This document shows positions 3,265 through 48,244 of a stretch of 64,000 bases of DNA, one piece after another. A model generated the notes under the pieces. The model saw nothing but the letters and a program-made list of their open reading frames with translations, searched no databases and was not told where the DNA came from. The DNA is from Penicillus capitatus (taxonomy: Eukaryota; Plantae; Chlorophyta): the NCBI GenBank assembly GCA_965649825.1, contig OZ287694.1, positions 681,197 to 745,196 on the forward strand. Direction: 5' to 3'. How positions within the stretch are numbered: the first letter of the stretch is position 1; every line of letters starts with the position of its first letter. Made by a program: the position numbers and the translations under genes.

Positions 3265-3269
3265 CGCGC

Positions 3270-22835: not shown

Positions 22836-25800
22836 TCACAATCCTGAGGAGAAACCCGCCGAATCTCGTCTGGCGTTCAGGCCAATGTTTGTTTGCTCCT
22901 CATCGGCTTTGGATTTGCGAATGAAGCTTCTCATGCGAGGGACATTCTGCGCCACTTTGAAGATCATGAACTCGCGCATCACTCGCAAATTGCCAAGCGT
23001 ATCGATCTGTGGAACCTCTTCTATTCCCAGTACGACACGCATATAGGCAAAGGTTGCCTGAGAAAAGACAAAGCCCAAGAAAGCCAACAGTCCACAGATC
23101 GACAGAAAAAATAAAACTGATAGCACTACCCTCAGAGCATTTCCGATCCGATCGTCATTGAATAAGAGAGCCATGACAAAGGTAATGTTCGAGAAAAAGA
23201 GAACGGCCTCTTCATACACATTCAGACTGGCAAATTCGTTTCGGAAGGGATGACATATCGTGTGCAGGTACAGTGCCGTGGTCAGGATGCAGACGGCAAG
23301 GATGGCTTGGAGGTTCGATCCTAGGTGGTATCCAAATGCCACGACGATCGTCAACAGCGCTTTTCGGAAGAGGACAAGAGATTCCCAATAGATAAACCTG
23401 TCGGCGTAAGCCCGATACAGAAACGCTGTGGCATCCATAAACCAGCTCTCGTGAGAAGGATCGCGGCTTCTCTTTCTCAGCAGCTTCCACGACAACAGCA
23501 CTGGGAATCCGATCGTGAAGAAAAGGAGGACGGGTAGGCCAAGGACACTGACAAGGATGGCATGGGATCCTGCGAAACACTCGACGGTGGTCGCCTGTGT
23601 CCAGCGATAGCTCGTGCTTTCTGCGCCCGTGTGAATGAATTGGTGCACTCGGACGCAGGAAAGCATGTTCGCGGCGTTTTTTGTGATCCAGACATAGGTC
23701 AGGTAGGAAACTGCAAGGAAGCTCAATGACCACCTCTTCTTCAAATACTCCCAGCTTTCTGCGGATCTCATCGCCACGCAGAACCAGAAAACGCCGTGCA
23801 GGAGGAGAGCGGTAACTGGAACGGCTATGGTGACGATCGGGCGAAGGATGGACCGGGGGAAGGCGGCCTCCACCGGAATGAGACATTCGATGGAAAAGGA
23901 CGCCGTGTTCAACATCATGCCTCCAACGACATCTATCCATCGAACAGTCTGTCCCTTGTCCGAAAGCGGGACGATGGCGGCCTACCTGTTGCCGAGATCA
24001 GCGACTTTGCCGAGGATGTCCAGTTGGAATTGATGTATATCGCCACCGAAATCATCTGTAAAAAATTGATCGTGATCTGGAAACAAGAGATTCTTTACGG
24101 AGCCGCATCTGATGCTGTATGTACCTTAAAGATCTCGACGAGTTTCCATTTGGCCAGTTCGGCTGACAGTTGGCTATCTTCGTCGCTTCCACGACTGCCT
24201 GCGATCTCGGTCGCCTGGCGCCTTGATGGGACGACTCTGCTTGACGGACCACCGAGTTCTGCCAACTGGAGTTCTTCCGGAACAGAAACGGTCCTGATCA
24301 GCTTGCGTGCTGGCACTTGGCGAAGGAGCCGCGCGATGTCTTGTCCACTTGATAGAGCTGGTCCCAGACTACTCTTGATGGCGAAGCTGCTGAGTGCCAA
24401 AACGACGACAACAGAGAGAACTAGGTAGGCAATGCTCAGGTCCTTGTCACATCGGTCGCAGTCCAAAGAAGACGTATGACCGTATCCACTTCTGCATTCA
24501 CCACAAAGTGGTCCTCTGTATCCCTGCTTCACGAGAGATAGCAGAAAAGGGGTTAGGAAAACGAACACGAGACCTCATTGCATTGTTCTTCGGCGTAGGC
24601 ACTTTCAATTGCCGCATTGAGATCACAGTCGTGCATATCTCTTGTGATGGCGACCAGCTGCGCCTCTCGATCAAAATCGCACGCCGATTGGCTCAGGCAT
24701 TCCTGCATGTGCACGGAGCACGGATACGGATGCCAGTACTTTCGGTTCGGCTGAATGACGTTATCGAATGCACAGTTTGCATTCGGAGGACACGGCTGAC
24801 ACGCGTCATCCTCGGGTGACATTCGATACTGAGTCTCCGTACAGCGAACACATAGTTTCTTCTGCTCCGTCGGCGCTTCGCCGATGACACACGGCCGGAC
24901 GGTGATGTCCATGGACAGGTAAGGCAGCAGTGCTTCACTGAATGCAATCTTAACACCGTAGTCTCCGGGAACTTGCAGTACTCGTATCTCTGAGAAGTTT
25001 GCCGTTCCGTCCTTCATCAGCACGCTGATGTTTCCAGGAAGGAGAGGACGATTCAGTGGCTCCGAAGAGAGCGTTGCTCTGACGACTGCTTCAGTAGTGC
25101 CGACAGCGGAGCCCTGATTGAACGCATCCACGACTCGAAGTCGAATCGTCGGAAGCAAATCGCCACTTCGGTGAACGGGTAGAGAATACACCGTTCCTTG
25201 CACTTTCTCACAGACATCTCCTACGCCGCGTTGCTCATCTTCGACGCACCAACTAATTCGCCGAGCGTAGGAAGCCACTTCCTTTCCGGAAAGACGGGCC
25301 TTATTCGCTGTCCATTGGTCGCACACCCACTCGAGGGAATCCAGGATGTGTAGAGCGCTGCTGGTCCCCTCATCGGCGAGAGTTGGCATAGGCTGGTTGT
25401 GGTTGTCAGGACAGGCGACCCGGATGGCTGTTGGATCACCTGCGAAAAGAGCACCTCCCGATTCAGCTGCGTTCTTCGTCAGAACGCTGTCGATTAAGGC
25501 CATCAGCGTACAGGAAGTGCCAGAGGCACTGCAGTCTCCTTTCGTTTTCATACCAGAGAAGAAAATTCCCCCTACCAGCAAACAAGCTTAGCGAAACACT
25601 AGATCCAGTCTGCGTCACCTCCCAATGTTGCTCGGTTTCCTTCGAAACGGCAAATGTCAAACTGATAAGCGATGCCGTGTGGTATGGTATCATCTATGTA
25701 GACTGCACCGCCAGCGTCGAGCGCCCTGTTGTCCTCAAAAACGCAGCCAGAACAAAAGAAGGAGGCATTCATTTGTGCATGAATACCACCCCCGTCTGTC

Positions 25801-28800
25801 GTCGCCGAGCATCTCACGATGTGGAGATCTGTGGCGTTGATATAGGATGCTTCCACACTGATTGCTGCACCTTTGGCAGCAGTGGATTTTGAAATGTCGA
25901 CGCCAGCAAGGGTGATTCGGCTTCCAGTCGACGCCCTTATAGATCCACCTTCATAAGTCGCGTCATCTTTCTCGAAGAGCGCCTCCTTGATGAAGACAAC
26001 GGATCGGTCAACTGCCATGGATCCACCCCTTCCAGCCCTGCCATTCTGAAATCTATTCCTTTCCAGAACCAGATTGCTTTCTTGGACAAAGAGTGACCCG
26101 CCAGTGTCGTTGCTCATGTTGTCGACGAAGTTGCTTGCCGTTATCGCCGCAGGTCCCCCACTTTCCAAAAAGGCTCCTCCGCCAAGACCAGCTTTGTTTC
26201 CAAGGAATGAGCAGGAGTCAATCGTCAGGCCAAAGCAGTCCCGACAGTTGATTCCTCCGCCGCTTTTGCCTGCCACGTTCTGCTCCAGAACCACGACAGA
26301 TCCACTCATCCAAGCTTCGAATATGTACATGGCGCCGCCATATCCTTCAGCGCGGTTGTTGGAAAACCACAAGGTGGAGAGAGAAACATTCGATGTTCGC
26401 TCGGTGAATAGGGCTCCTCCCGTGGACGCTTCGCAAGAGGAAAACTGTGTGTCGCTGACGACAAGAGTACTCTTGCGTGCGAAGACGGCGCCGCCGTACG
26501 AAGCGCGATTCTTCTCGAACTTAGACGAGGTGATCTCGCAAAAGCTGTCCTCAAGAAGACAGATGCCGCCGCCGAGAACGGGGTCCTTGTTTGCGAGGAC
26601 GGTGACGTTCGTCATCTTCAGTACGGCATCCGTCACGTCGACGGCAGCTCCGCGATCCACGGCGAAGTTGTGGCTCAGTTCTGAATCGCGAATCTCCACT
26701 CGGCTTCTCTGATCGCACTGGATTCCGCCGCCGAAGAACAAGGTTGCGTTGTTCTTGGTGATTGTCGATGATCGAATGGAGACAAGTGCGTTCGTGGATC
26801 CGATGCCACCCTTGGACTTGGCGGTATTGTGCTTGATGTGACATCTTGCTATGAATCCGGCGGATTTGGACAACCTCAGCGCTCCGGATTCTTCTCCAGC
26901 CCAATTCCCTGACAATACGACAGACGTGGCGTTCAAATGGCCTCTCTCGATCACGTTGATAGCACCGCCCCTGTTCTGCGCTTTGTTGTCAGCAGCTGTG
27001 CAATTCGTCAGCGTCACATGTGACGTAGCTGCGTGTACAGCGCCTCCATCTTTCTCGACGACGTTCTTCACGAAATTCGTCGCTTCGAGAGTCGCCTGAC
27101 CCTGAGTGACGGCTATTCCTCCTCCCTCTTCGGCTTTGTTGTTCCGGAATACGCACGAAAGGGTACCAAGAGCCGAAGCGTTGACGTGCAAACCGCCGCC
27201 AGAATTAGCAGAATTGGCATTCATCTCTGTTTTCTCGAGGCGGACTGAAGACTTGACGATGCACATTCCGCCTCCGTTCCTGGCAGAGTTATCGCTGATG
27301 TCAGCGTGAGTGATATACCCCCAGATGTCTTCGGCGTAGAGACAGCCTCCTCCGTTCTCGGCGCTGTTGCTGACACACGTCAGCTGAGATATGTTGACGG
27401 ACGTCTCCTTTACGTAGATGGCGCCTCCAGAATGTGTGGCCGCGTTGCGTTTGAATGCACAGTTGTCGATCTCCAGTGATCCACCAGAAGCGAACAATCC
27501 TCCGGCATCACCTCGCACTTGGTTGTCTGTGAATTTGCAGTTGCGGACTCTGGCGGAGCTTTCTGTCGAAGAAACTGCGCTTCCTCGTGTGATTTCCGTT
27601 GAGGTGACCGCAAAACCCGAGTGCTCAACGACTGCCAGTGCGATTCGAAGAGCCTCTTCTGTCTCTTGAACCGAAGCACGATTTCTTTCGAATACGCAAT
27701 CCACGATCTCTGCTTCGCTGTCACTTTCCACCCGTACGAGCGGTCCCTCCGAGTTTGCCACAAAGAAGGAACTCGTCAACTTCAGTGTTCCGTTTGTGAC
27801 GTGCAGACCAGGAATCTCATTCCTGCTGAAGTTGAGGCCGACAACCGTTGTCGACGACCTTGATGCGGCATGCAACAGCGACAGTGCAGAGGTCTGGCGC
27901 GGGGCGTCCACTGGCACGTTTTCGCTGAGCACGACCTTTCTCAGGTGACTGGCGGAGGAAAGCCTGGCGAAGCAGGCCTCTCCGCACGTGTTGCCTGAGA
28001 ACTCGACGCCGACCATCTCCACGCTTGAGCAGTTGGAGCGACGGGAGGAGAATGCGCTGGCTCCGTTCAATGCGTTTCGACGGAACGCCACGCTGCGCAG
28101 CTCGATCACTCCGTCCGACGTCTCCGCATCGCACTCGTCGACCTCGACGATAGCCTGGTCTTCCCCGTCCAGGGAGCAACCCTCGAACGCCACATCTGCA
28201 AGAACCGCGTTCGGCGTCCTGCGAGCCGACGGCGTCAGACCCTCAGCAAAAGCGAGAGCAGTCACCTGAGGAGAAGGACGCCCGATCCTGGAGGACATTC
28301 GAATCTCGTTTTCCTCTGCCGTTTGGCTGAAGTCGATCCTTCGCGTCCGGTCTTCGTTCTGCTCGATCTCAGCGTCAGGTCGTGCGGCAGCGTGATCCGC
28401 CTCGGGGGCCTGACGGTCGTCGTGACGTCGAGAAGGACGACGTCTCCCTCTCTGCTGCAGTTGACGACTTTCTGCAGGTCATGGGATATCTCCTTCAAGA
28501 ACTGGTCGTCAACCGTCCACCTTCGGGACCCCGCGTCGAAGATATTATCGATCTCCTTCTCGGTCAGCTGACAGCTGAACTCTGCACACATGGAGCTGAT
28601 GTCATTTTACAGACAATGCAGATCGAACCTTCATTGTTGTTGCGGTTGTCGGTGCGTCGCTGAAGCAGTGAACGGACAACCGTCTGCTCCTATTCATAAG
28701 CAATAGTCATTCTGCGAGTGCAGTTGCATGACGTTATAATTACGTAGTGATGTGTCTTGATTGTTGCGCGTGCTTCATGACCTGTTCGCAAGCAATGCGA

Positions 28801-29077
28801 AACGGACAGTTCTCCTACGCACACCAGGTGTCCATTATTCCAAAACATGTTGTCTGGCAAAAGAGAGGGAAAACTCATCTAGTCCGTTAAACTCGAGCCG
28901 TCAACAAAACACCGCAGTTTTCTTCCACTGTGTCATATAGTTAAGACAGGCACCTTGCGTTTGAAGTGAGCGTTTTGACATTGTTTTTGAATTGCACTGG
29001 ATATTTGAACCTCCTTGGACGACACTCGACAAGATTCCAACGACAACAGACAACAATGCTCTGTAGAGTGTCTTCAT
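22836..29077 (-). CDS. Receptor-like protein A: signal peptide, long parallel beta-helix (PMP GGA(I/V)/FxxN repeats), Cys-rich ephrin-receptor-like region, multi-pass TM domain; multi-exon
   Basis: Signal MKTLYRALLSVVVGILSSVVQG; RSLLQ motif; 899-aa exon of GGAI/GGAV and FxxN repeats; CVRCTETQY...CQPCPPNANC and GYRGPLCGEC; TM region with RAYADRFIYWESLVLFRK. 5' splicing is ambiguous. Confidence 0.85.
27210..28686. repeat. Near-identical inverted repeat arm 1 (partner 35314-36790), 1477 bp
   Basis: Reverse complement matches 35314-36790 with only scattered substitutions, including two introns, except a diverged tract at about 27590-27697. Confidence 0.95.
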
Positions 29078-30959
29078 GCTGAACAGTGTTTTCTCAGGGT
29101 GCCGTCTTGTGAATGACAGCGACTCTCTTGGCGCTTTTTTAACGAATGCGTCACAAGCACTTGCAAACAACTGGTCTTGGAAGAAGAACACCCCTTTCTA
29201 GAGGGCTCTTTGCCTTTTGCGACCTCTTGCAAGGACCGATTTTTGACTAAAGTATATGTCCTAGTCTTCTTCTTATGCTTCTGTCAAATTCTCGAAGTGA
29301 CACAACGCTGCTATGGCGTCAGATACGCGACTGATAGCACCCACCCTGGCATGCTACCATCTACATGGGATACTGTGTGGTACGCGTCTATTGCTGCCAC
29401 GTGTCTCTTCAACCGACTGAACCGCGGAGAAACGACGCAGTAATGCGTTAAGAGCAAAAGTCGAGGCCCGAGAACACAGTCAGCGTCTTCTGCAGGAGTC
29501 TCCGCTCACCGCGTCTCAGTCTACCGGAGGCAAATACGTTCGTCTGCCGCAACTGGCCTGCGATTTTCAATTTCGCGGCGAAGAGGAAAGGGGTTTTCGC
29601 AGCGTCTCTTTGGCGCAGCATCGTTTTCTAAAACGCACCTTGCTTGCGCTACGTCAGAAGATGATGATGTGAAGGACAGCTCACGTTTGAGGTTCTCACA
29701 CCATTCTGCTGTCGAACGCTAAGAAACTCAAGTTTCATATCGCAGCATCAACTTTGGCACACGAAAAAGAAAAACACAAACGGAGCCAGATTCGAGATGA
29801 CAACACGGTTGCCGTTTATGAAATGCTTCGAATGGGATGGTGCAATAATCCCAGAGATACTTCGTTCTCGTAGCTACGTCTAGGAAGAGGTTGGAATACG
29901 AACCACTCACCTGCAGCTCGTTTGCCTGATGCTTTGTTGAATTGGTCTAATAACAGAGCAAGCGTTCTTGGAGTGTGTATGTGAAATCCCTGTACGCTTC
30001 CACGTCGGATGGTAACCGCACGACTCCCTTTTCGACGCACAAAACTCTGCTAAAAACATCATCTAGCCGATAGTAGAACTTTGATTTTTCTTAGTGCACT
30101 TAAACATCGAGAAACTGTAGCATTCGCGGTGGTGGCAACGAAGCTCGACATTGAACGATACCAAATGAGGCGCGTGTATAACTCCAGGGAGTTTTAGTAC
30201 AACCTAAAACCGGTGTCATGCCGAGAACCGGCAAACAGAGTGCTATCGGGCCCTGCGACTAGGCTGACTTCCGACTGACCGCTGCTGTATATATCCGTGA
30301 ACGCATGGGAACTGCAACTCAACACACGGCCGTGAGCATTTGGTTATTTACATAGAATGGACGGACGCACTTCATCTTCTAAGGAACGGCGTTTTGCTGT
30401 CGGATACGGGAACACGCTGTCTCTGGTCGAATCGCTTTCGTTCATTCGCCGCCGCCGACTGCTTCTAACATTGTACGGCATTCGTCAGATGTTCATAGTC
30501 GATGTGACAGGACTCTTCGTGTTGCCACGCCGCAATTCGTTCCAGAACAGCGCTGCCTTCTGAGCACGAGTGGCTGAGAATGTGAAAGGTTCGTTCTTTG
30601 TAAATACCTTTTCACTGTCACTGAGTATGGCATGCTTCCATCCTGCAAACAGGCTTTGAACATATCAGTCGCAAACCTCTTTTTCTACGTTCTTTTCTTG
30701 GTCCATGTTCTCATCATGCTGTTCAGGAGCAGCTTCGAGCGTTGCCACATCAAAACATGAAACGGGATCTTGACTGTTGCTCGCCACGGATTCCAGAGAT
30801 GCACTTGCAGAGTTCCACGACATTGATTCTGAACCGGAATCTTCCGCGATGAATGTCACAGTACTAGGAAGGCTGGTCTCCTCCACCAATTTCTGTGGCA
30901 GGCATTCTTCCTGTCCACTGCAGGCCTCCATTAGGGACTTGTCGGTGGCCGACACATGC

Positions 30960-31950
30960 AGACAGTTGACAATAGTGTTTGATAATATCTGCTTCAAGCA
31001 AGGAAACGAACCACATCTATCTGCCACTCATCCTTGTGCGCTGCAGTCAGACAGGCTAGCAGCGCAATTCTTGAAGAAATCGCGACAAACGTGGTAGCAT
31101 CGACCTGGCGCGTCAGATAGCGAGAATCACCTGAGGAGCACGCAACGTTAAACGGGTCCAGATTCTGCATCGGAGCAGTAGAAGGGAAATGGCTTTGGTT
31201 ACAGGAATCGTCGAAACAGTCGTTTGTGTACGTCTCCTCTCGAAGTTTGCATGTTATTGCACGAAGATTGAGCAAAGACTCTGTGCGCTTCGACGGTCTT
31301 ATCAAAGATGCCGGGAGGAATTTGCGAACCAGTTAAAACAGAACTAGCGAAGGACATTATCAAATCGACCGAACTACGAGCGCTATTAAGAAAATGGATA
31401 GGGAGACCAAAGCTTGACAACCAAACAGATGACACACGCAATAGAATTGAAGCCACACAGATCATTTTAGAAGCCTTTGTAAGTGAATTATTCTATTATT
31501 TTATTAGTTGATTATAGTATAATGTCGGAAATGCTTTTAACACCTTGATTGTCTAAAGCTATCCAGACGCTTATAACGGACGTATTTGACATCATGAAGG
31601 AAGAAATGAAAGAACTTGAAGGCAAATTAGAAACACACTCCAAACTTAGATAAAGGAGATACATGGTACAAGCGATACGAAAGCCTTTAAACGACGCCAA
31701 GTCTGAGAGCCGAGACATTAAGAAAGGATCCGAATACATCGAAGGACAACTGTTTGCAAGAACTTTTATGTACTACAGACTCATAGTACTTAAGGATGAG
31801 CCAGATTACGATTAATGAGTTTTTGGCAAGTGTCGGCGGAGTTAATCAAGAACGTGATTATATTGTGAAATTGACATTTAAGAAGAGAAGAAACGTTCGT
31901 CGGGCGCTATGAGAGTACAAACTGATAGGGTACCTCGAACGTCACATCCC
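30960..31950 (+). repeat. Second copy of the about 1-kb dispersed gene-relic repeat (partner 4190-5235)
   Basis: Direct alignment by eye; same conserved frame and intron-like tract. Confidence 0.85.
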
Positions 31951-33659
31951 ACCGAAACTTTCTTCTGCGCCTTTGTGGGTGCATATTCTACGGCTCGATC
32001 CTTCTCCATAGAAAGAGAGAATCACAATAGCGTTAGCTCCCTATTAGAAGACAGGATGACTTGAGCACAATTTGAATCATAAGGTTTTCGATATCAAATA
32101 TTCTGGACAAAGCAAGGAGGACATTGGAATGTGTAAACGTTTCATGTAGACAGTCGAATGTTGATGCCGGTCGGCTCTTCTTGTTTTAAGCTTCATAGAA
32201 TATTGAAAGCATTAACTGGATAGACTGTCGATTGAAAAGCATTCTGGGCGGGAGAAGTGTATAAGTACTATGTACTTCTAACGCTATCCTTGACACCAAG
32301 GACGGAGACAAAAGTGTTCTCTTGTCGAGAACTGAGTATGGTAGATAGAACATACAAAATCGGAAGACAAAGGAAGACGGTTCATAGAACACAATTCTTC
32401 CGTGAGACAATAGATACTTAGGGAAACCGGATCTCAAAGTTCAACATTTGTTTGTACCGTACGTATCTTTATTTTTTGCTGCTGAGAAAGAAACAGATGA
32501 CCAAGAACAAGAATTCGGTAGATACTTCTGAAAGCCACCGAAGTGCATTTATTCGTTGGTGTTATTGTATAGAGTGATGCCTATAAGTCCGTCCAATTAC
32601 ATACTACAAGTCGACACTAAATTTATCCTTCTAGGGCATTTCACAGTGTTTTTTCATACGGTCTCTCGTATGATTGGTATTAGAACGTAGGATTTCTTGA
32701 TGACTTGTTTCCCAACCGCAGACAAAGGAGTTTGCCGACTTTGTTCCTTTCCTAACTTAAGTGAGTGCAACTTACTACCGAAGCATAACCGATCTGACAA
32801 GGCCGTTGTTTAACAACGCAATTCACACACACCATTTGCTTCTGGTGCACTTTCCGTTGCGCAGAATGATCATGCCATCGAAAAATGCGTAACACTGTCT
32901 CTCAGATTTCGTACAGTCAACCGATCGACGCCTAAAATGACCCATTGACTAGACATCTAAAACAACTCAATTCATCTAGCTCTGCATCTGAATAGAATGT
33001 CGCCGTTCTGACGGTAACAAAATGGTTGCCTTGATCACACACAGACTGGTCCTACTTTTTAGTCAGATAGCAAGCAATCAATGAAGAGATAACGGGCTAT
33101 GTTCCGGACAGTCATGAAAAAAAACAAAGGGAGGATAAGAGTACCGTTCGTACTCGTCTTTCCTGCCCTTCCGGTTATTCCTCTGTTCTGGCTTGCACGT
33201 CGAACGATGTTTTGCGTGGAAGATCTTTTCAGCAGTCCGCGCTGGGTTGACGACGTTGCAACGCGTCAAGCTCGACTTTAGTCCAAGTGCTGTTCTTGTC
33301 GTAGCGTGCGCGTCGCTCGGTGGTCCACCGTGTCCAAAAACGAAGTTCATCTGAACCGTAACGCTGAACAAACAAACAGTCGGTACACCGTCGATTCTGC
33401 CGACGCAGATGACGGAACGTATGGACGTTGGGCTCTCGCTTTGCACGATTGACTTGTTTGCCCGCCAAGGAAGACGTCTCGATATCCTCAGACCACTCCT
33501 GGCTTCGAGCATCGTCGTGTTTATCTAATCAGTGAACAGGAGGGACCCCCAGATCATCTTGGCATACCTGTTATCATCGAGGGCGATCTCACTATCCATC
33601 CCTGTGCTCGTGGATTCAGTACCTCGTAAAGCAAGATGCCATGGCAGCAGATGTTATAC

Positions 33660-33915
33660 TGACTGTGCGATGCTGCTGTTTGGATGACTGTGCGATGCTG
33701 CTGTTTGGATGACTGTGCGATGCTGCTGTTTGGATGACTGTGCGATGCTGCTGTTTGGATGACTGTGCGATGCTGCTGTTTGGATGACTGTGCGATGCTG
33801 CTGTTTGGATGACTGTGCGATGCTGCTGATGTTATACTGACTGTGCGATGCTGCTGATGTTATACTGACTGTGCGATGCTGCTGTTTGGATGACTGTGCG
33901 ATGCTGCTGTTTGGA
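33660..33915. repeat. Minisatellite: 25-bp unit TGACTGTGCGATGCTGCTGTTTGGA (A) and 28-bp variant ending GATGTTATAC (B), order A6-B2-A2
   Basis: Units counted directly; a partial B tail precedes the array at 33644-33659; no spacers. Confidence 0.97.
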
Positions 33916-34973
33916 TGTGACCTTCGTCGTGTCCTTCGCTAGGCAGATCGACGCGGCCTGTCACATCAAAGGAGACCTGAATGTCTGGGATGCACGAACT
34001 CTCTCTGTTTTCCCTAGAAGGGGTAGGTTACCTCTTTGGGTGAGAATGGCAATACACCGGTCCGTGGTTTACATGTCTGATGTACTCGGATGATTGCCAT
34101 CAGTCCACTTAATGAATAGCCAGTCGACAACATGACTGGTGGGAGATCGGCTCGCAACAGCGGTAAGCCCTAATCTCCTTCGAATCCAACGCAACGGCGT
34201 GACAGTCATCGTTTGCGTGACTGTCTTAGGAGTGAGTGTCCTGTCCATCTGGCACGTCACATCGGTGGAATGCGTCTACAGACTATTCCTCATCGCTGGC
34301 TGGCACGCTGTTTCTTGGGTTTTAGATAACGATCGATGCAGGTTCCATTGCTAAACACAACACAGATGTCAAGATGCTTGACATCTGAAGACACCAGATC
34401 TCCCCTTCAGTTGCTAAACCGGACAGCTTGACACTGACTTCCCTCATATGAGTTGTAAAAGCTGCGACTCCATGGATCGCAACGAACGAACAGCGCGGCT
34501 TTCGCACTTACCGACGAAACACACTGTGCAAACAGCTTCACTAGGGCTCCTTGTCCTTGAGCCGCCACGAAGTCGTCCTCTTTGACACATTCAGGTCGAC
34601 CGAGTCCGACACGTGGCAATACAAGACAGTTTCGTCGCCGTGCAGATGATGATGCTGCTCAATATGAGAATCTTTCCGTCGTGCGTCAATCGCCACCCAC
34701 ACTGCATCATTCGCTGTGACACCTGACACCGTTGTTGTGTCATTACCAGAATCGAAAAGGAAGCGAAGTCATCTGTCGCAGGGGGGACCACCATACGGCA
34801 CGCAAGCGTCGCTTTCACTAGAACGTCTGCCTTGCTTCACTTTTCGACACTTTATTTTTTTAGCCAACGCGTGCATCGTCATGTGCTCGCTACGGAAATT
34901 CACTGCTGCGAAACATATCGAACGAAGCAGCTGTGCTACACAAGGATGGAATCTTTGGGCGATACTGCCCGTA

Positions 34974-37900
34974 ATGCCTACACGCGCCAATTTTCGTTTC
35001 TTCGCTGTCGTTACCTTTCTGTTTGTGCGTCAAACGTGCTCAAGTGGCCATTATGACTCAAGGGAAACAGCAAAGTCTTCACAGGAGTCACAAGGTGCCC
35101 CTTTTGAATGTCCATGCGGTTTTGTTGGAATTCGCGTGTTGGTACTGGTTTCGGTTCCTTCAACAGTGTTATCTGTATGGCAGGTGGCGAGATAACTTTG
35201 CAGTTTTGGCGAACAAACATTGCGAACGCTTCCTCTGGAAACTCGACCAGTCGCGTAAGCGATCATGCTTCTTCGCATCTTTCTGTAAACGTAACGTTGG
35301 CACATGGCAGGACCAGACGGTTGTCCGTTCACTGCTTCAGCGACGCACCGACAACCGCAACAACAATGAAGGTTCGATCTGCATTGTCTGCAAAATGACA
35401 TTAGCTCCCTGTGTGCAGAGTTCAGCTGTCAGCTGACCGAGAAGGAGATCGATGATATCTTCGACGCGGGGTCCCGAAGGTGGACGGTTGACGACCAGTT
35501 CTTGAAGGAGATATCCCATGACCTGCAGAAGATCGTCAACTGCAGCAGAGAGGGAGACGTCGTCCTTCTCGACGTCACGACGACCGTCAGGCCCCCGAGG
35601 CGGATCACGCTTCCGCACGACCTGACGCTGAGATCGAGCAGAACGAAGACCGGACGCGAAGGATCGACTTCAGCCAAACGGCAGAGGAAAACGAGATTCG
35701 AGTGTCCTCCAGGATCCGGCGTCCTTCTCCTCAGGTGACTGCTCTCGCTTTTGCTGAGGGTCTGACGCCGTCGGCTCGCAGGACGCCGAACGCGCTTCTT
35801 GCAGATGTGGCGTTCGAAGGTTGCTCCTTGGAGGGGGACGACCAGGCGATCGTCGAGGTCGACGAGTGCGATGCGGAGACGTCCGACGGAGTGATCGAGC
35901 TGCGCAGCGTGGCGTTCCGTCGAAACGCGTTGAACGGAGCCAGCGCATTCTCCTCCCGTCGCTCCAACTGCTCAAGCGTGGAGATGGTCGGCGTCGAGTT
36001 CTCAGGCAACACGTGCGGAGAGGCCTGCTTCGCCAGGCTTTCCTCCGCCAGTCACCTGAGAAAGGTCGTGCTCAGCGAAAACGTGCCAGTGGACGCCCCG
36101 CGCCACACCTCTGCACTGTCGCTGTTGCATGCCGCATCAAGGTCGTCGACAACGGTTGTCGGCCTCAACTTCAGCAGGAATGAGATTCCTGGTCTGCACG
36201 TCACAAACGGAACACTGAAGTTGTCGAGTTCCTTCTTCGTGGCAAACTCGGAGGGACCGCTCGTACGGGTGGAAAGTGACAGCGAAGCAAAGATCGTGAA
36301 TTGCAGTTTTGACAAAAATGGAAATTCAAATCTACGAACAGAGACAGGTCACCAGAAAAGAACAAAACGGGATGAAGATAGCGTCCTCGTGGGTGGCCAG
36401 ACAAGTGTAATGCGAGGAAGCGCAGTTTCTTCGATCGGAGGCTCCGCCAGAGTCCGCAACTGCAAATTCACAGACAACCAAGTGCGAGGTGATGCCGGAG
36501 GATTGTTCGCTTCTGGTGGATCACTGGAGATCGACAACTGTACCTTCAAACGCAACGCGGCCACATATTCTGGAGGCGCCATCTACGTAAAGGAGACGTC
36601 CGTCGACATATCTCAGCTGACGTGTGTCAGCAACAGCGCCGATAACGGAGGCTGTCTCTACGCCGAAGACATCTGGGGGTATATCACTCACGCCGACATC
36701 AGCGATAACTCTGCCAGGAACGGAGGCGGAATGTGTATCGTCAAGTCTTCAGTCCTAGGACTTGAGAAAACAGAGGTGAATGCCAATTCTACGCAGTCTA
36801 GCGGAGATGTCGGAGCAAAACGGCGGCCGTCATTCTTGTGCGATACTTGCGTGTTCAAGAGAAACGAAGCCGAGCTTGCTGGTGGGGCAATCTACGCGAA
36901 TGTCAGTAATTTACAGAGACTTGTGCACCATTTTGACGACTGCCGCTTCGAAAACAACAGAGCACATCTGGGAGGTAATGCAAAACCTCTCCCAAATCTG
37001 TCGAGTCTGTTCCAATACAGGTGGCATCTTCCTCACAGGCAGCAACTCCACGGGGAACTGCCACATATCAAGCGACGACTGCACAACAACAGTCGTAAGT
37101 GGGAGCATTTTGAAGCACAATGTGGCAGAGATGGGCGGCGCTCTTTTTGCAAACGATCCAACGGCCGTCAACATTTCCTGCAGCCAAGAAAACACGACGA
37201 CCCATTCATCCGATCCCCTTCCACAAAGCATCCAGACTCTGACTTCGCTTGACGCAGTGTGCAGTAGCTGGACATCTAACAACGCCCGTCGTTACGGAAA
37301 CCAAGTCGCATCTTACGCAGAAAAAACAATCTGGTGCACGGAAGAGAAATCACACAACAATGAGAGTCGCTGGCAACAGATTGAAGGGTACAACCATTCT
37401 GTCTGCCGGCATCGCAGCGGCGACCCACTTCCCAGCATCCGTCTGCAGATGGTCGATGCATTCGATCAAGGACCAGCCGTGAATGCCGACGATGCGCTCG
37501 TCCGCGTGGTGATGTGGTCAGAGCCGCAAGACAACGCTCTGTTCCCCGGAAACGTGACCATGATGATGACAGACGGCACGGCAGAGTTTTCACAGATCAA
37601 TGGTCTGCAGCTTCCCGGCAACTACGTCATCCGGATAGACTACAGTGAAGCGAAACTGCCTGGACTGAAGATCGACGTCAACATCCGTTCCTGCATTATC
37701 GGCGAGGAGAAGTCAGAAGATCGCAAACTGTGTGTACAGTGCCCAGAAACGCAGTACAATTTTTTGCCGGAAGATTCGGGCTGCAAAGACTGCCCCGCTC
37801 ATGCGAATTGCAAGCAGAGAAACGTCATTCAGCCAGAGAACAACTACTGGCATGATCATCCGTGCTCCACCCACATGCAGCAATGCCTCAGTCCCGAAGC

Positions 37901-39693
37901 CTGCGTCTTCGATCGTCGAGCATCGCATCTGGCAAATCTCACAAAAGACATCGAAGACTGCAACGTCGATCTATCGATTACAGACCAGTACGCCGAAGGG
38001 CAGTGCCACAAGGTGTGTGTGCACAGGGCTTCAGTCTTTAGGTATAGGTGCTGTTGTAGGGATATGGAGGGCCACTGTGTGGTGATTGCAAGGCTGGATA
38101 CGGCCAGACCACTTCATTCAACTGCGAGCGTTGCCGGAGGGACCACGGCATTGTCTACGTCGTCCTCTCCGTGCTCGCTGTGCTAGGTCTCAGTAGTTTT
38201 GCCATCAAGAGCAGTTTGGCTCCAGTGCTGTCCGCAACGAGAAACATGGCTGTGTTGCTCCGTGCAATGCCGGCGCGGAAGAAGATACGAAAATTCACCG
38301 ATCCACTGGACCACCGGCGCGAGAAATCGGATGGCTCATCCATGGTGGTCCATGCACAAAGCATACAGTCTTTCGACATCGAACACTCCGACAGCAGCAG
38401 AGAAGAGCGTGAGAAAGAGGCCGAGCTTGCCAAGTCCAAAATCGTCGAGATCTTTAAGGTATGTCGAGCTGCGCTTCTCGTCTGCCGATCTGTGTTGCTA
38501 GATCACGATCAACTTCCTGCAAGTGGTTGCCGTGGCTGTCAACATCAATACCAACTGGACAACTTCGGCCAAATCGCTGATCTCAGCGACAGGTAGGAAC
38601 CATCCGACAGAAAGGCGGCTGAGCTGTTTGGATCGTAGATGCCGTTGGGGGTATGCTGTTGAGTACAGCATCGTTCTCTGTCGAGTGTCTGGCGCCTAGC
38701 GGCTCACTCCTTCCAAGCTGCATCGTCCGTCCGATCGTCAGCATCGCGATTCCTGTCGCCGCCGTTTTGCTCTACGGCGTTTTCTGGATGTCCATCGCCG
38801 CGATGACGTCGAAGAACTGGGAGTACGTCAAGAAGAGATCCATGCTGAGCTTCTTAGCCATTTCCTACTTGACCTACGTCTTCATGACCAAGACGGCCGT
38901 CAATATCCTCCACTGCATCCAAATCCACGAGTTTGCCAACGTCGACTGGCACAGCCGAAGCTCGCGCTGGTCGCAAGCCACCACCGTGAAATGCTATGGA
39001 CCTTTTCATGCCCCTCTGGCCATCACCCTCGGCTGGCCCGTTCTCATCGCCTTTACCATCGGCTTCCCTCTCTTCATGTCCTGGAAACTGTTGAAGAGTC
39101 GAAACGCCGAGTACTCTCGGGAGAGTTGGTTCATGGACAGCACGGCATTCTTCTATCGAGCCTATGCCGACAAGTTCATCTACTGGGAATCGCTCGTTCT
39201 TGCCAGGAAGGCGCTGTTGACGATCGTGGTTGCGATGGGACACGATCTCGGTAGCAATCTGCAAACGCTTCTGGCCGTGTGCATCTTGACAACGGCGTTA
39301 TATATACAGACAGCATCGCATCCCTTTCGTCCTGAATTCGCGTCACTGAATCAGTACGAAGAGGCGGCGTTGTTTGTGTCCAATGGCACCTTTGTTCTGG
39401 CGCTCTTCTTCAATGATGACCGATTGGGTCACGTTGTCCGAGTGCTGCTTTCGATGCTGTTTTTTGTGCTCATCTGTGGATTGTTCTGTTTTTTGATTTT
39501 TGTGTTTCTCCGAGCGACATCGGATTACATGCGCATCGTTCTGGGAATCGAAGGCGTGTCAAGAGCACATGAGCTTAGTGATCTGCGTGTATTTTTCGTC
39601 TTTCTCGATCTGAAGGCGGCGAAGAAGGTTCCCAATATGAGGCGATTCCTTCATGCTGCGGAAACGGATGTGGAAACGGATTCCAGTGCCTGA
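34974..39693 (+). CDS. Receptor-like protein B, paralog of A with a shorter beta-helix; multi-exon
   Basis: Signal MPTRANFRFFAVVTFLFVRQTCSS; a consistent GT-AG model through DQTVVRSLLQ, the beta-helix repeats, HRSGDPLP, CVQCPETQY...CKDCPAHANC, GYGGPLCGDC, ITINFLQVV and the TM domain (RAYADKFIYWESLVLARK). Confidence 0.88.
35314..36790. repeat. Near-identical inverted repeat arm 2 (partner 27210-28686)
   Basis: As for arm 1; the diverged tract is at about 36300-36412. Confidence 0.95.
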
Positions 39694-40729
39694 AAGAGCC
39701 AAATGAGCGCATCAGGCTTTTTCCTTTATGACGCATTCGCTTCGAAATTCGACAGAATAAAGATGGATGCATAGCGCCATCGTGCTTGTAACGATCCATC
39801 GGCATTTCGTTGGATGTCTCAGGCGAGACGCATTCCCGCGGGGTTATGTATTGTTCAAAATGTGCCATCTGTGTCGCAGAAACGATGGTGAACGCGGATG
39901 ATGATAAAAACAGGAGCTGACGAAAGAGAGCGGCAGTCTGGCTCACTCTTTTTAACCTATATCAACTGCGAAAGATCACTTACGTTGTGCACGGCGTTCT
40001 GCGTTTGGCGCTTATTCGGTGCAAGGGCGAGAATGATGCCTGGGTAACGGAAAAATGCGTCGTTGTGTTCTGTCTGGTAGCGCTGTCGCAAAGGGTGGCT
40101 GCTAAAAGAACAAAGCTAGGTGGAAGTGCCCTTCAGTAAAAGGGCTTCAGGTGAAGCGTTAAATGTTGTTTTGACGTTGGAGGAGGAGGAGGAGACAGCC
40201 ACAGATCAAGAAACGGGTAACGATCTCGTGGCGGAATACGCACTCAATCGACTAAAAGTGTGACGTCACTCTTTAGTCTCATCCTCGAGCAATACGACTG
40301 GTCTCTTGTAGAGGACAGAGAGGTAACGTCAAGGGAAGGGAACCAACCGTTCAATGGTTCGTTTCGCGACGCGATTCTCTTTGCCAAATGAGAATCTATA
40401 AGAGCAGCGCGAATGACAGTTGACCAGCTGTTCGAAATGGCGACCGGTTATGGTTAAGAGGTCTCGGCAACGAAGGGCCGTCTATTTGTTTGGCACATGT
40501 CGACGGTCTGTCATTCCAGAACGAGCTCCATTCATTTGGTCTCCCTAACTTCACCGTCTTATTTACTCCGTGATTGCTGAACTCGTAAACAGAAATGCTT
40601 CATCATCCGGTGACTATTCTAAAAAACAATACCCATTACTCAGCCTCCAGCATTTTGTAGGGAATCTATATACTGCTGTGTCTACTATTAGCAACTGCAG
40701 GTGATGGAATAACGGTATCTCGTCCTTAA

Positions 40730-41704
40730 GTGAGACGTGTGGATACAGACACTGCTAGGGAGACGTTTCGAAACAGAGCGAATGTCGTGCGTGAACGCGT
40801 CAGCGATGGCACGACGACATTACCGACTTCTTTGTCGACGGATGATAACAGCTATCCAAAGAGCAGATATGGTCTGAAAGCTGTCATTACTGACAGCACG
40901 CCGGAAGAGGCGTATGCGGTGTCGATAACGACCGAAGAGCGTGCCATAACAAAAGAACCTGACGTTACGCGACCGAGCGCGAGAGACTGGATGTCGTCTC
41001 AGATGATCATCAAAAGTCCGTTTGATGCGTTTCTTAAAGATAAAGCCAGTCGTTCACTCGACGAAACAAATGGCATTCCCCTCGACGATGGAAAGCGGCG
41101 AGGAAGTGTGATATTGACTTCAGTCTTGCGGTCAATCAAATCTGAGAACTCGTTGGACGAAGAGGAAAAAGACAAGCAAGAGGAACATCCTTCTGTGTCT
41201 CTTGTCGCTCAGCCTTCGGCAGCGGACAGCATTGAGGCTGTCACTTTGCGGGTGGGACCAGCAGTGGCAGAGACCCGTTCTTCCGTACCGGAGCCGGAAG
41301 CTTCGCATGACACTGTGGAGTCTTATCCAACTCCTGATCCGGAGACTGGTAGGCTGAATATGACCAGCTCCACGGGGAATATCGTGATAAGATTTGGAGC
41401 GGCGACACCGCGACCTGTGGCGGAAATGGGGTCAGTGGCCACTTTCGAAGTGATCAAAGGGAGTAAAGCTGCGCCGGATACTGCTCCCCCACTCGCGAAA
41501 CCGCCTTCTGCTAGCCCTAAACCGCCGGCGCCCTCGCTCACACTACACGCACCGCTGCCTATTAATGAGATAGGACAGCGCCCAAGTCCACCTCACTTAC
41601 CGGCTAACCACAAGAGAAGAGCCAACAAAAAGGCTAGGAGAAGGGCGAAGAGAAGAGCCAAGAGAAGAGCCAAGAAACTTGCCAACCTCGTTCCGTCACC
41701 ATAA
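40730..41704 (+). CDS. Disordered Ser/Pro/Glu-rich ORF with a basic KRRA-repeat C-terminus, function unknown
   Basis: 324-codon open frame beginning at GTG after an in-frame stop, so probably a 3' exon or a relic; 12-bp aagagaagagcc repeats at about 41620-41680. Confidence 0.4.
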   Translation: MRRVDTDTARETFRNRANVVRERVSDGTTTLPTSLSTDDNSYPKSRYGLKAVITDSTPEEAYAVSITTEERAITKEPDVTRPSARDWMSSQMIIKSPFDAFLKDKASRSLDETNGIPLDDGKRRGSVILTSVLRSIKSENSLDEEEKDKQEEHPSVSLVAQPSAADSIEAVTLRVGPAVAETRSSVPEPEASHDTVESYPTPDPETGRLNMTSSTGNIVIRFGAATPRPVAEMGSVATFEVIKGSKAAPDTAPPLAKPPSASPKPPAPSLTLHAPLPINEIGQRPSPPHLPANHKRRANKKARRRAKRRAKRRAKKLANLVPSP

Positions 41705-42158
41705 TAGCTACGGCGTCGACTTGGAAAGACGACCAGATCAGTAAGAACTCGAATAATGCATCGATGAGTTTCTGTAGCGCATCGCGCAATGGAAACGGGA
41801 GACTCGATGGTCACACTTGTCATTTTATTCACTCTATGTACAGTTGATTGCATTCGATCTCACGCGCAACCGATCATCGCGTTGTTCGATCGATACACGT
41901 CCGACGTCGTCATCGAGCGACGTTTCGCGATACCCTCTCGCGAGGCGACCAGCGCTTGAACCGCGTTATCGCTACGCGTTCCTGCCGATGCTGCATAATC
42001 TACGAAAACGAGAGCCCCTCTCGTGCTGCTCTCCTTTATATACAGCGTCCAAAAGGCAGAAGGATCTCGTGGGTCATCTCTGCTGCAAATGGCAGGCATT
42101 AAATACAAACGCACGCGGCATTTCACACAAAACGGAAGGCATCATCGAAGCATTGACG

Positions 42159-45100
42159 ATGTCCGAAGCCGAAACGCTTCAGAGTCTGGACAACGTCTTG
42201 ACACGTCTGGCGCTCACTTCCGAGTCCAACCTCCAACAGGTCCGACGTCTTTGCCGTCCACTCCCCGACGACTTCCCTTTCCTGGCAGGTTCTCTGGAAA
42301 CTCATCCCCGCTGTGATACGGCAACTCAAGTTTCCAGCCGCCGCCATTCGCAACAAAGTCCTGCAGATTCTCTCGCACGTTAACAAACGACTGGACGTAC
42401 GCGATGACGACATCACACTTCCGCTGGTCGATTTGGTCACTCTTTTGCAAGAGGCGGATCGCGAACAGCAGGCGACGATTCGTAGCTTTGCCCTTGTCTA
42501 CATCGAAAAGGCCTCAGAGAAAACGACACCCGATGCACGCCGTCATGTCTTGCCTCATCTCTTGACCAACCTCGCCGCCCGACCCATGGAGCAGCGGACA
42601 ATTCTCCTGCGCGTTGCCATGACCTGTCTCGAAGACTGTCCAGCTTCGCGTCCATCGGAGCTGATAAAGAAACAGAAAACGTCTGCGGAAGACGAAATGT
42701 TCAACTGCCTACACGACCCAGCAGACCGCACGGCGTTTGTGGAATTCGCCTCGTGGACGCTGCTCTTTCAGACAAAGCAACGTGCCACCATTTACAAAGA
42801 GCTCGTGCACAACGGCGAGTCGGTCGTTGCCCCTCCCCAAGTGCAGGACGTCCTCACGGCGGTGGCGTCTGGGATGTCGCTGGAGCGCATGAGGGCGGTC
42901 GAGGGGAAAATGCAGTGGACCGATGAGCGTCTCAGGCGTCGCAAGGTTGGGATCCTGAATTATGTACGGGAGATAGGACTTGGACGCGCAGCATTTCTGC
43001 CGTTCTTGATTGCCTCCGTCGACGGGGACGAGGAGGTGAACCGCACCGGCAAAGCGCTGCTCAAAAAGCACTTCAGAATCGAGCAAGACTCTAAAGATCT
43101 TGATCTAAATGATCCGGAATTGATCCGAGAAGTATTCCGCCTCTTTCAAGGTACCATAGCTTCGGGCCAGCTTCCAACCGAACAGAACGTCACATCCTAC
43201 TGTACACCTGCCTCGCATGCGCTCAAAGCCAGTCTATTGGGGCTGCTGAACAAGAGCACAGAAGCAGCCAACCATTACCCAGACAACATACAGGTAGGTG
43301 CCCTTACTCAAATGCCGCGGTGCCATTCACGAATGCTCTTCCTTAGGTGATCTGGAGCTGCATCTTTGGCAAACAGGTGCCGATGTCTCTCAGGCTACAG
43401 GCGATGGAGTTTTCCGTCTGGGTCGTGAAACATGCCAATGCCGAAACACTCGACGCTCTGGCAGAGCCTATGCTGAACGAACTGCTAGGCTTTATGCACG
43501 GAGACATCTCCGCGCGACAGAAGGGTTATGTCTATGATGCCATCGGCCAGCTCGCCCAAAGACTGCCCTCTGTTTTCCAAGGCAAGATCCAAATCGCAGA
43601 GGATCTCTTTGCAGCACTAGAGACCGAACCTCCCGGTGGATATCGTCTCTCCTCTCATAAGAAGTCACTCTTTTTGATGCAGGCGTGAAATCGCAGCTTC
43701 AGTCTGCCGTGGCGACCCTCTCCGGTGCATACCAGGCGACAGATCCTGCCATTCAGGAGCTTCTCATGAACAGCATCGAAAGCAGCAGCAGTGCTGTTCG
43801 ACTGACGGCAGTGACATGGAGTATGCGACTCTTCCCGTTCCGCAACCCTATGGCACGGACGATCTGCATCGTCGGAGCTGGCGACGGCCGTTCCGAAGTC
43901 CAATCCGAAGCGCAACTTGGATTGGACCCCGTCTCCTTCTCCAGAGAATCCACTTCCGGCAAAGCTGCCGCCTACCCGTCGGTCTCCGAGCTCCTACAGT
44001 TCTTGAAAGAAAACAGTCTCTGGTGGGATCGCTGTTTTCAATGAGAAAGTGTGAGATGTGATGCGTAGGGTGAAAAGACGTTTGGATCATTCGGATAACA
44101 TCTATCAAGTCCTGATCTCTTTTCTCACCACAGCCTATCTCGCAAGCAGCGATGCTGATCGACATCTGCCCCATGTCGAGTTGACGGAACTGCTGGTGCT
44201 GTTTAAGGGAGCGCTGACGATGTCTGCCTCCTCTGCTCTCATCATCGAAGCGATGGAAGCTATGGTGTCGCTGCTGATGTCGAACAGAGATGCCATGTCG
44301 CAGTGGTGTGTGGATCAGATACCGGACTTCAAGAAATGGCTCTTTCATACCAACAACGCCGTCCGGGTTCCGTCCGCTCAGCTCATCGGTATCGCCGCGG
44401 CGGCGCTCACTCCTGCAGCGATTCTGAACCACATCGAGGAGTTCCGTGGCGTCCTGTGCGCTGTTCCCAAATCGAAATTCGAAGCTCGGAGCGGTGCCAT
44501 ACAAGCACTAGGTTCAGTTTCCCCTTGTCATAGCTGAGGATCGATGTATGGGTCGGTAGGGTATGTGGCGGCTTCGAATCGGAACGAGGAAGTCACGCGG
44601 AAGCTGCTGGAAGTGACCAGGGATGCGTTTCTGATCTACTTGGACGATGCCGATCCGCACTTGGCCACCACGGCTGCGCTGGCCATCGGTCACCAACTGC
44701 TGAACCCCGCTTTCTGCGCAGCGCTTGTAAACGACGCTGGCCTCGAGACGTTTTTCGATACCGTGTGTCCCAAGCTGCAATCCTTCTGTCGTCACAGCGA
44801 TCTCCACGTGGCGTCCACGGCCGTCCTCGCCACAGGACTGATCTGCAAAGGCCTTGAGGGCGTTCCTCACATCGAACAGCGATGTCTGATGGATCTGTTG
44901 TCGCTGCAAGACCTCAAGAGCGATGAGCGTCAGTGTTCGATCGGCGAAGCGATGGCCTTGGGCTTTGCAAAGGACACCATTTCCTCCGACTGGATCCTGC
45001 TCTTCAATTACAGCTGTCTCAGAAAACTGCCCATCGATTTAGCATCGCTCGGTGCACCGAAGGCATCGGAGGATGTCCACGGAGGCGTTATCGATGCCTT

Positions 45101-47819: not shown

Positions 47820-47825
47820 CGACGA

Positions 47826-48244
47826 CTATGCGTCGTTGACATGAAAAGGACAGTCTTTCGATTTCCAGAGAACGATATTAAGGTGCCGCCACTTGAGCCA
47901 GATGTGTTGCCGGTACTCGTGACTCGCCGCACCTACACCATCGACACCGCGTTGACGGAAAAGGCGTTTCGAGGCCCACAGGCGAAATGATCGCCGACGA
48001 CGCAATGGTAGACGCCATCCGTCGCTTTGCCGGTACCGGGATACCGCTTGTCGTATTCTTGCTTGATCGCACCGGCCACTTGCTTCAAATCGAGTGCACC
48101 TCCTTGCCCGGCGCCGCACTTCTCCAGTGCCGCCGTGGCGATCTCGACGGCGCTCGTTTGGTAAGCAAACGGCATTTGACTCCTCAAAACGCGCACGGCG
48201 GCAATGCCCGTTGCATGGTCGGCCTCTTCTGCGTTCTGTGCCAT
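47826..48244 (-). CDS. Dynein light chain type 1 (LC8-family), two exons
   Basis: IKQEYDKRY...YHCVVGDHFA|CAASHE...IVLWKS follows the LC8 fold pattern, with a short insertion (PGTGKATDGV); GT-AG intron near 47933-47980. Confidence 0.85.

Follow-up and report, generated by a model that had tools for sequence, protein, structure and literature searches.

A window of 64,000 nucleotides (nt) from the green alga Penicillus capitatus (contig OZ287694.1, positions 681,197 to 745,196 of the forward strand; "the window" always means this whole stretch) carries two genes, wL and wR, which lie head to head and contain the arms of a 1.5-kb inverted repeat, one arm in each gene. The comparison of the two genes with their counterparts in a related species points, with little room for doubt, to an old duplication in which a 5' tract encoding the ectodomain has been subject to recurrent gene conversion from arm to arm. 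The net effect is a near-identical N-terminal ectodomain on genes with different promoters, leaders and membrane/C-terminal modules.

The predicted proteins consist, in this order, of a signal peptide, a right-handed beta-helix with PMP repeats, a Cys-rich region, a transmembrane (TM) helix and a multi-TM module. The arm codes for residues 42-487, i.e., for the N-terminal part of the beta-helix ectodomain, and wL and wR are 90-97% identical there outside a short island of unrelated sequence. The label "receptor", which is used below for convenience, is a guess from this architecture.

Paralogs and orthologs across the inverted arms

By blastn the left arm (28691-27196) matches the right arm (35309-36804) with 92.9% identity over 1507 columns, including 85 mismatches and 9 gap openings, and the gap between the arms is 6,617 bp. 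By length and match this is the top inverted repeat of the window, in which the sole other one has 549 nt at 84% identity. A repeat finder gave ungapped blocks of 96-98% identity (27658-28691/35309-36342, 27349-27587/36413-36651 and 27242-27350/36647-36755). When the arms were aligned base by base, 967 of 989 positions were identical in block 1 (97.8%; right copy 35309-36297) and 370 of 389 in block 2 (95.1%; right copy 36413-36804), which in addition has two 3-bp indels. The island between the blocks is essentially unrelated (49 of 115 positions identical, 43%), but of equal length on both sides and in frame. A sequence-only reading of the window had described almost identical arms of 1477 bp at 27210-28686 and 35314-36790. 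The repeat exists, but each arm extends 14 bp beyond the stated outer edge and 5 bp beyond the inner one, and with two blocks of unequal identity flanking the island "almost identical" was an overstatement.

The arms and the island were located as follows (RL and RR are the counterparts of wL and wR in the related species):
Left arm: 27196..28691, minus strand, from ~110 nt before the end of intron 1 through exon 2 and intron 2 to nt 1,023 of exon 3 of wL
Right arm: 35309..36804, plus strand, equivalent portions of wR
Island, left copy: 27588..27702, minus strand, 115 bp, 62-65% identical to the other three genes (wR, RL, RR)
Island, right copy: 36298..36412, plus strand, the form common to both related-species copies (76-78%)

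Outward of the arms the genes can be aligned at ~65% nucleotide identity for ~2 kb (25046-23018 versus 37537-39553), and inward of the arms the adjoining sequence is not alignable. Several other elements of the sequence-only reading were borne out. Introns do lie inside the arms, namely intron 2 (28219-28265/35735-35781) and ~110 nt at the end of intron 1. Between the 3' halves the identity is indeed about one half, with 51% of the amino acids identical from the Cys-rich region to the first TM helix (TM1), 62% in the multi-TM module and ~65% at the nucleotide level. The first exons are indeed unalike (27% amino acid identity), and both (28954-29077 and 34974-35094) lie in the 6.6-kb spacer and encode a signal-peptide-like hydrophobic N-terminus.

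The closest database proteins to the open reading frame (ORF) encoded by the arms (68% and 65% identity) are themselves encoded head to head on one 208-kb contig from another ENA sample. This contig is syntenic with the window from ~11.6 to 48 kb at 70-82% nucleotide identity. Its gene pair, RL and RR, was aligned with wL and wR, and the sliding identity along this four-way alignment shows three regimes with sharp borders. On the 5' side of the arm the identity is 70-79% between orthologs and ~45% between paralogs. The arm itself has 95-99% identity between the paralogs of a species and ~80% in all four between-species pairs, and in the 3' half the values are 80-90% for orthologs and 58-68% for paralogs. 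To quantify these groupings the parsimony-informative sites of the quartet were counted, in the order paralogs together : orthologs together : third grouping:
5' flank, 7 : 123 : 7
Arm (two blocks), 153+59 : 0 : 0, i.e., 212 for the paralog grouping
3' half, 13 : 382 : 11
3' flank, 2 : 47 : 4

Since the arm groups the paralogs and the flanks group the orthologs, the duplication long predates the species split and the arm was homogenised separately in each lineage. The synonymous divergence (dS, Nei-Gojobori) shows the same picture: between paralogs it is low in the arm (0.05-0.11) and has reached saturation in the 3' half (1.3 to >3), and between orthologs it is 0.36-0.48 in the arm and ~0.4-0.6 throughout. 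The homogenisation includes intron 2, ~110 nt of intron 1 and synonymous sites. The between-species ratio of nonsynonymous to synonymous divergence (omega) is ~0.43 in the arm, the least constrained part of the gene, and 0.14-0.21 elsewhere. A homogenised arm between orthologous flanks is most readily read as interlocus gene conversion, and we hold this with high confidence. Homogenisation by non-crossover repair, as already suggested from the window alone, is strongly supported by the 212 sites to none in the arm, by the flanks (123 to 7 and 7, 382 to 13 and 11) and by the dS values.

The haplotypes allow a view on more recent events. The window represents one haplotype. Between positions 17861 and 33943 it agrees with a 16-kb alternative contig (ctg293591, 20x) at 100% identity, and a 1.84-Mb contig from the same sample (ctg340529, 34x; L008) is 98.2-99.5% identical to the window and has the same arrangement. 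Because the window matches the alternative contig and the 1.84-Mb contig differs by 0.5-1.8%, the organism is taken to be diploid and heterozygous. The related organism is likewise represented by two haplotype contigs, which are 98.5% alike. In a four-arm alignment of the two haplotypes there are 31 fixed differences between left and right arms, none between the right-arm alleles and 25 between the left-arm alleles. At 25 of these 25 sites the other left allele equals both right alleles, and the sites are clustered, with, for example, four within 6 bp at the island edge. After polarisation with the related species the derived base is the one common to the paralogs at 10 of the 25 sites, where ~2 would be expected from mis-polarisation by a rough estimate. 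In the related species the haplotype proteins contain a run of 5 amino acid sites at which one allele equals the other paralog. As the left-arm alleles differ where one of them has the right-arm base, conversion appears to be still active. This suggests segregating conversion tracts and ongoing conversion, as far as two haplotypes per species can tell.

The two species share the 5' border of the tract to the homologous base, within intron 1 (window 28691/35309; REL 12737/20155). At the 3' side the related-species arm, which is 2,329 bp long, has a sharp end at RR 22483/RL 10412; its last ~800 bp are 99.5% identical and the orthology of wL and RL resumes exactly where it ends. The window arm ends at 27196/36804, where the beta-helix of wL is 2.1 kb compared to 0.7 kb in the other three genes:
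wL-specific long beta-helix: 25051..27195, minus strand, no counterpart in wR, RL or RR; adjoins the 3' end of the arm with its 5' edge

In this region both related-species copies resemble wR, not wL. Residues 60-1014 of wL are collinear with four outgroup paralogs, and wR and RL skip ~300-480 internal residues. Because wL is collinear with these four more distant family members, the long beta-helix is regarded as the ancestral form, and we infer that the right gene lost part of it. A recent conversion of the wL segment or the island from a third paralog was considered and dropped, as nothing closer than 33% identity turned up: this is the level of the closest match to the wL-specific 2.1-kb segment and the island among 5.8 billion proteins (P0058, same chromosome).

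In the history that we propose, an entire gene, exon 1 included, was duplicated head to head before the split from the related species, which has the syntenic pair. That exon 1 was part of the original duplication follows from the paralog exons, which keep length class, phase and donor. Non-reciprocal recombination between the arms of the same chromosome then overwrote one copy with the other repeatedly, in both lineages separately and confined to a tract from intron 1 into exon 3, i.e., the N-terminal beta-helix ectodomain. The 5' limit of the tract may be set by intron 1, exon 1 and the promoter, all of which diverged long ago. At the 3' end the 1.4-kb length difference between long and short beta-helix would act as a heterology barrier in the window lineage. 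In the related lineage a recent right-to-left tract would have run ~830 bp further, which swapped the long beta-helix of the left gene for the short one. The 115-bp island would be a stretch skipped by conversion and thus a relic of the old paralog divergence; it is read in this way because its identity to the other three genes is at the level of that divergence.

Some points weigh against this history. The conversion is deduced from patterns in assembled sequence, not from reads or transcripts, and the polarisation of the allelic differences relies on an outgroup that is ~20% diverged. The related species comes from a metagenome-type assembly, and if it were a homeologous subgenome the logic would hold but the "lineages" would be loci. 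The shared 5' boundary could be ancestral and would then need no independent maintenance. The GC content is 0.565 in the arms, 0.54 in the unconverted beta-helix and 0.52-0.53 in the 3' halves. This excess in the arms is compatible with GC-biased conversion, for which it is weak evidence, and amino acid composition alone could account for it.

Alternative explanations

Three simpler origins of the near-identical arms were weighed against conversion. The window combines the sequences of two ENA contigs as a mosaic, and one of them ends in a minisatellite in the spacer; an assembly collapse or mis-join could in principle have created the repeat. However, the arms differ at the 31 fixed paralog sites common to both haplotypes and in the 115-bp island and indels, both arms and the spacer lie within the single 1.84-Mb contig (L008), and the structure was assembled independently from another sample, again in two haplotypes (L001/L002, L003). 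The probability of an artefact is therefore negligible. A recent segmental duplication, either of the 1.5-kb arm alone or of the whole gene with rapid divergence elsewhere, would fit the high arm identity and the sharp edges, but we give it next to no credence: the related species has a pair with the same edges, the flanks are anciently diverged (saturated dS) and group by orthology, and both first exons are still alike in length class, phase and donor motif. Purifying selection of extreme strength on the ectodomain, in place of conversion, would be suggested by the arm being coding with an intact ORF. However, the orthologs are ~20% different there with an omega of ~0.43, and the paralogs are just as alike in intron sequence and at synonymous sites. 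As introns and synonymous sites are homogenised too and the arm is least constrained between species, purifying selection is not the cause of the identity, and this explanation is extremely improbable.

Two further proposals concern what the arrangement may do. The spacer, on which the first of them turns, is:
Spacer: 28692..35308, no strand assigned, 6,617 bp, both first exons and most of both first introns

The upstream sequence is conserved between the species for ~1 kb on each side (28693-30108 and 33895-35307). The middle of the spacer is not conserved and contains a dispersed repeat (30983-31947) and a 25-bp minisatellite (33660-33917, ~10 copies). The dispersed repeat has a direct match at 4222-5235 (73-86% identical) and no ORF with a Pfam match; it is probably what remains of a transposable element. 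The minisatellite contains the end of the 16-kb alternative ENA contig (window 33943), and the haplotypes are most different beside it, with 57 differences in 500 bp (33000-33500). None of the 10 spacer ORFs of at least 70 amino acids matches a Pfam family above threshold, recombinases included, and no Rfam or tRNA features were found in the window.

According to the sequence-only reading the pair could be an invertible switch, in which a crossover between the arms would turn the 6.6-kb spacer around and give each receptor body the promoter and leader of the other. In the full form of this explanation the exchange would be reversible, and the arms would be kept alike for, or by, the flipping. 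The topology was right, since 1.5 kb of 95-98% identical inverted arms enclose both first exons and the upstream regions; recombination intermediates evidently form, given the conversion, and inverted repeats elsewhere yield rare inversions (PMC3723533). The switch itself nevertheless found no support. Only one spacer orientation was seen, in four of four assembled haplotypes from two species ~20% diverged; for the second haplotype of the related organism the collinear stretch spans the left arm and reaches into the spacer. The 5' flanks pair with their own orthologous bodies (123 sites against 7 for the swapped grouping), the arms show no cross or chimeric left/right patterns at the nucleotide or protein level, and chimeric ORF variants are absent from the 90% protein clusters. 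No spacer ORF encodes a recognisable protein, recombinase included, although a recombinase could be encoded elsewhere. In the human Y palindrome P6, conversions outnumber inversions ~20 to 1 (PMC3723533). Flipping would moreover not explain the homogenisation, because a reciprocal crossover leaves the arms unhomogenised. The switch is thus very unlikely, and the small probability that we leave to it is kept because four consensus assemblies could miss a rare minority orientation. There is a slim chance that in this apparently siphonous, multinucleate alga crossovers accompanying the frequent recombination of the arms occasionally invert the spacer in single nuclei or lineages. If so, the swap of promoter and leader between long- and short-ectodomain receptor bodies would act as a low-frequency, reversible expression switch. 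A selected "paired receptor", a layer atop the conversion in which a shared ectodomain is kept so that two receptors with different regulation and different membrane/C-terminal modules recognise one ligand, is a more plausible but still tentative proposal, and on balance we doubt it. It would fit that the tract and its 5' boundary persist in two lineages with exon 1, promoter and 3' halves distinct and under purifying selection (omega 0.14-0.21), that all four genes are intact, and that the primate pair SIGLEC11/16 is a parallel down to the relaxed constraint on the converted exons (omega here ~0.43). Another head-to-head pair of the same family is found in the related genome (L004 14197-19778, minus strand, and L005 5414-11032, plus strand, ~5 kb apart), and it has no high-identity inverted arms. 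Proximity and orientation are therefore insufficient for homogenisation, which is mild support for selection. However, conversion is self-sustaining at high identity, so that its persistence needs no selection and the shared ectodomain may be a neutral by-product of proximity, and the ectodomains are not equivalent overall, as they differ by ~480 beta-helix residues and the island. In addition, the protein family is without functional assignment and its C-terminal half has no Pfam or PDB match. If selection does maintain the layout, this would hint at a general way to couple one recognition domain to two outputs.

Gene models, protein family and neighbourhood

The gene models were derived from a comparison of the window genes with their related-species counterparts, guided by the periodicity of substitutions, by stops in frame and by length differences not divisible by 3. 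This yielded four complete seven-exon models (wL, wR and the orthologs RL and RR), all of which translate without interruption once spliced. The two ortholog proteins have 1408 and 1393 amino acids, and in the four models intron 1 is 324-373 nt and introns 2-6 are 43-57 nt long. The window models are:
wL: 22836..29077, minus strand, 1874 amino acids, 7 exons
wL exons: 29077-28954, 28581-28266, 28218-25619, 25571-24574, 24523-24125, 24076-23986, 23932-22836, minus strand
wL introns: 372, 47, 47, 50, 48, 53 nt
wL exon 1: 28954..29077, minus strand, MKTLYRALLSVVVGILSSVVQGG..., signal-peptide-like, outside the arm, phase 1, donor AAG|GTGCC, 70% amino acid identity to the ortholog
wL 3' half: 22836..24964, minus strand, part of the Cys-rich region, TM1 and multi-TM module, never converted, 80-94% to the ortholog and 58-68% to the paralog
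wR: 34974..39693, plus strand, 1388 amino acids, 7 exons, wL-like architecture with a beta-helix ~480 amino acids shorter
wR exons: 34974-35094, 35419-35734, 35782-36974, 37021-38012, 38060-38458, 38502-38592, 38639-39693, plus strand
wR introns: 324, 47, 46, 47, 43, 46 nt
wR exon 1: 34974..35094, plus strand, MPTRANFRFFAVVTFLFVRQTCSS..., signal-peptide-like, phase and donor motif as in wL, 27% to wL exon 1 and 63% to the ortholog
wR 3' half: 37620..39693, plus strand, never converted, groups with the ortholog

The first exons of the paralogs are now 27-38% identical, and in our reading, which is taken from the hydrophobic sequence rather than from a predictor, exon 1 encodes the signal peptide. 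Two other possibilities at the 5' end were rejected. An extra exon at the arm boundary would have AG|GAC in four of four copies, but it runs into a stop in the window copies or has incompatible phases. A start ATG within the arm (28634/35366) is ACG in the related species and is followed by a stop. In one ortholog the donor of intron 5 is GC. Some of the very short introns are read through by prokaryote-style ORF callers, as seen in the related species, where a 45-nt intron lies inside a 743-amino-acid ORF.

In Pfam searches the long ORFs that flank the spacer have Beta_helix and Chlam_PMP domains (wL: Chlam_PMP 2e-18, Beta_helix 1e-32; matches in wR are weaker). The Cys-rich region is followed by one hydrophobic helix, a charged loop and a module of ~7 further hydrophobic helices (~8 in total). 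This multi-TM module, encoded by the last exons (38653-39690/22839-23918), has two invariant residues, W178 and E236, and nearly invariant Cys, Pro and Arg-Lys at several positions. Sequence and profile searches gave no significant Pfam or PDB relative for the C-terminal half; the nearest, DUF7630 (E=0.003), is below threshold. An AlphaFold2 model of the module from an 8-sequence alignment had a predicted confidence (pLDDT) of 46 and was unusable.

A profile of the multi-TM module matched 3,778 cluster representatives (E<=0.001). The 13 long matches that were looked up are all from Caulerpa lentillifera (779-3385 amino acids) and have the module at the C-terminus; Beta_helix and/or Chlam_PMP was found in five of the five C. 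lentillifera proteins scanned against Pfam. With the same combination of domains, wL and wR can be placed in a large, uncharacterised and unnamed beta-helix plus multi-TM family of Bryopsidales (Caulerpa-type). Chlamydial PMP proteins, which are autotransporters, have the repeated PMP motifs of a right-handed beta-helix passenger in common with wL and wR. However, the C-terminal beta-barrel is theirs alone, and wL and wR have no autotransporter match but a Cys-rich region and ~8 hydrophobic helices instead. wL and wR are not members of the chlamydial family, as they are eukaryotic and spliced, and the repeat fold alone is in common. In the related genome at least 5 more family members are clustered on one 895-kb contig (L004 5351-11041; L006 5653-11041), the above head-to-head pair without homogenised arms among them, and one of the clustered genes contains internal tandem repeats of ~150 bp.

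Downstream of the pair the synteny with the related contig continues over 40226-48000 at ~82% identity, through an ECM29-like HEAT-repeat gene, and the pair thus sits in an ordinary, conserved neighbourhood. The ORF that neighbours wL on the left (20716-21783, minus strand) has no introns and encodes a U-box and, N-terminally, a region with weak similarity to MLKL_N, and a direct copy of it with 82% identity lies ~18.5 kb away (about 2450-3405). The second inverted repeat of the window (549 nt, 84%) has its copies at 469-1017 and 14645-15193. Compared with the synteny around them, window positions 30-1135 match the related contig in the opposite order, and this hints at an inverted duplication or a rearrangement on a local scale.

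Comparison with known systems

The mechanism proposed here is conventional, i.e., the known arm-to-arm conversion, in this case of part of a gene, and it opens no long-standing question. What the locus offers is a clean and well-bounded case of part-gene concerted evolution in Caulerpa-related green algae, where such work is scarce. In trees or orthology tables of the wL/wR family the N-terminal part would give the wrong history. Conversion would also have altered the protein architecture, as the long beta-helix was replaced by the short one in the related species. In Drosophila, the inverted hsp70 pairs are close, divergently oriented duplicates, and several species have each homogenised them by ectopic conversion on their own. 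In the flies the homogenised tract takes in the complete coding region, and the products do not differ in function, whereas here only the 5' third is affected and the rest is long diverged. Site-specific inversion switches are known from the bacterial Hin, Gin and Fim invertons, the yeast 2-micron FLP system and the flip-flop of the plastid inverted repeat. As in these systems, inverted repeats flank a promoter-bearing segment whose inversion would re-pair promoters with bodies. In contrast, no coexisting orientations, no recombinase and no short defined site are seen here, and the arms are ordinary coding sequence.

The palindromes of the human Y chromosome, such as P6 (PMC3723533), and of primate X chromosomes (PMC8327919) also consist of inverted arms around a unique spacer with intrachromosomal conversion. 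Like the pair described here they are conserved between species, have arms that are closer within a species, can invert but rarely do so, and show some GC enrichment. For P6, 56 conversions were counted against 3 inversions in the same chromosomes (PMC3723533). However, palindrome arms range from 10 kb to Mb at >99.9% identity, compared to 1.5-2.3 kb at 95-98% here, and the arm in the alga is part of a gene whose remainder has diverged, at an autosomal-type locus of a diploid.

The closest analogue is the primate pair SIGLEC11/SIGLEC16. The statement in the sequence-only reading that no such system is described holds for algae as far as the literature was searched, but the layout itself has been described for these genes. 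They lie head to head, 9 kb apart, and a ~3-kb tract with the exons for the N-terminal extracellular region has been converted repeatedly and separately in each lineage (PMC5701461). The converted regions are fragmented, the constraint on the converted exons is relaxed, and the TM and cytoplasmic parts are different (PMC5701461). Every structural and evolutionary feature described for that pair is matched in the alga, where the distance is 6.6 kb and the tract 1.5-2.3 kb. The differences lie in the proteins and in the organism: SIGLEC11/16 are primate proteins with Ig-like lectin domains and a single TM helix, whereas the green algal genes encode a beta-helix/PMP ectodomain and a C-terminal multi-TM module, and their ectodomains also differ by ~480 amino acids of beta-helix. 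In primates the pairing is defined by a common ligand, by co-expression and by opposite or different signalling, and the algal pair is likened to it by its sequence features. With this qualification, the head-to-head, shared-ectodomain layout of vertebrate immune receptors would extend to an alga.

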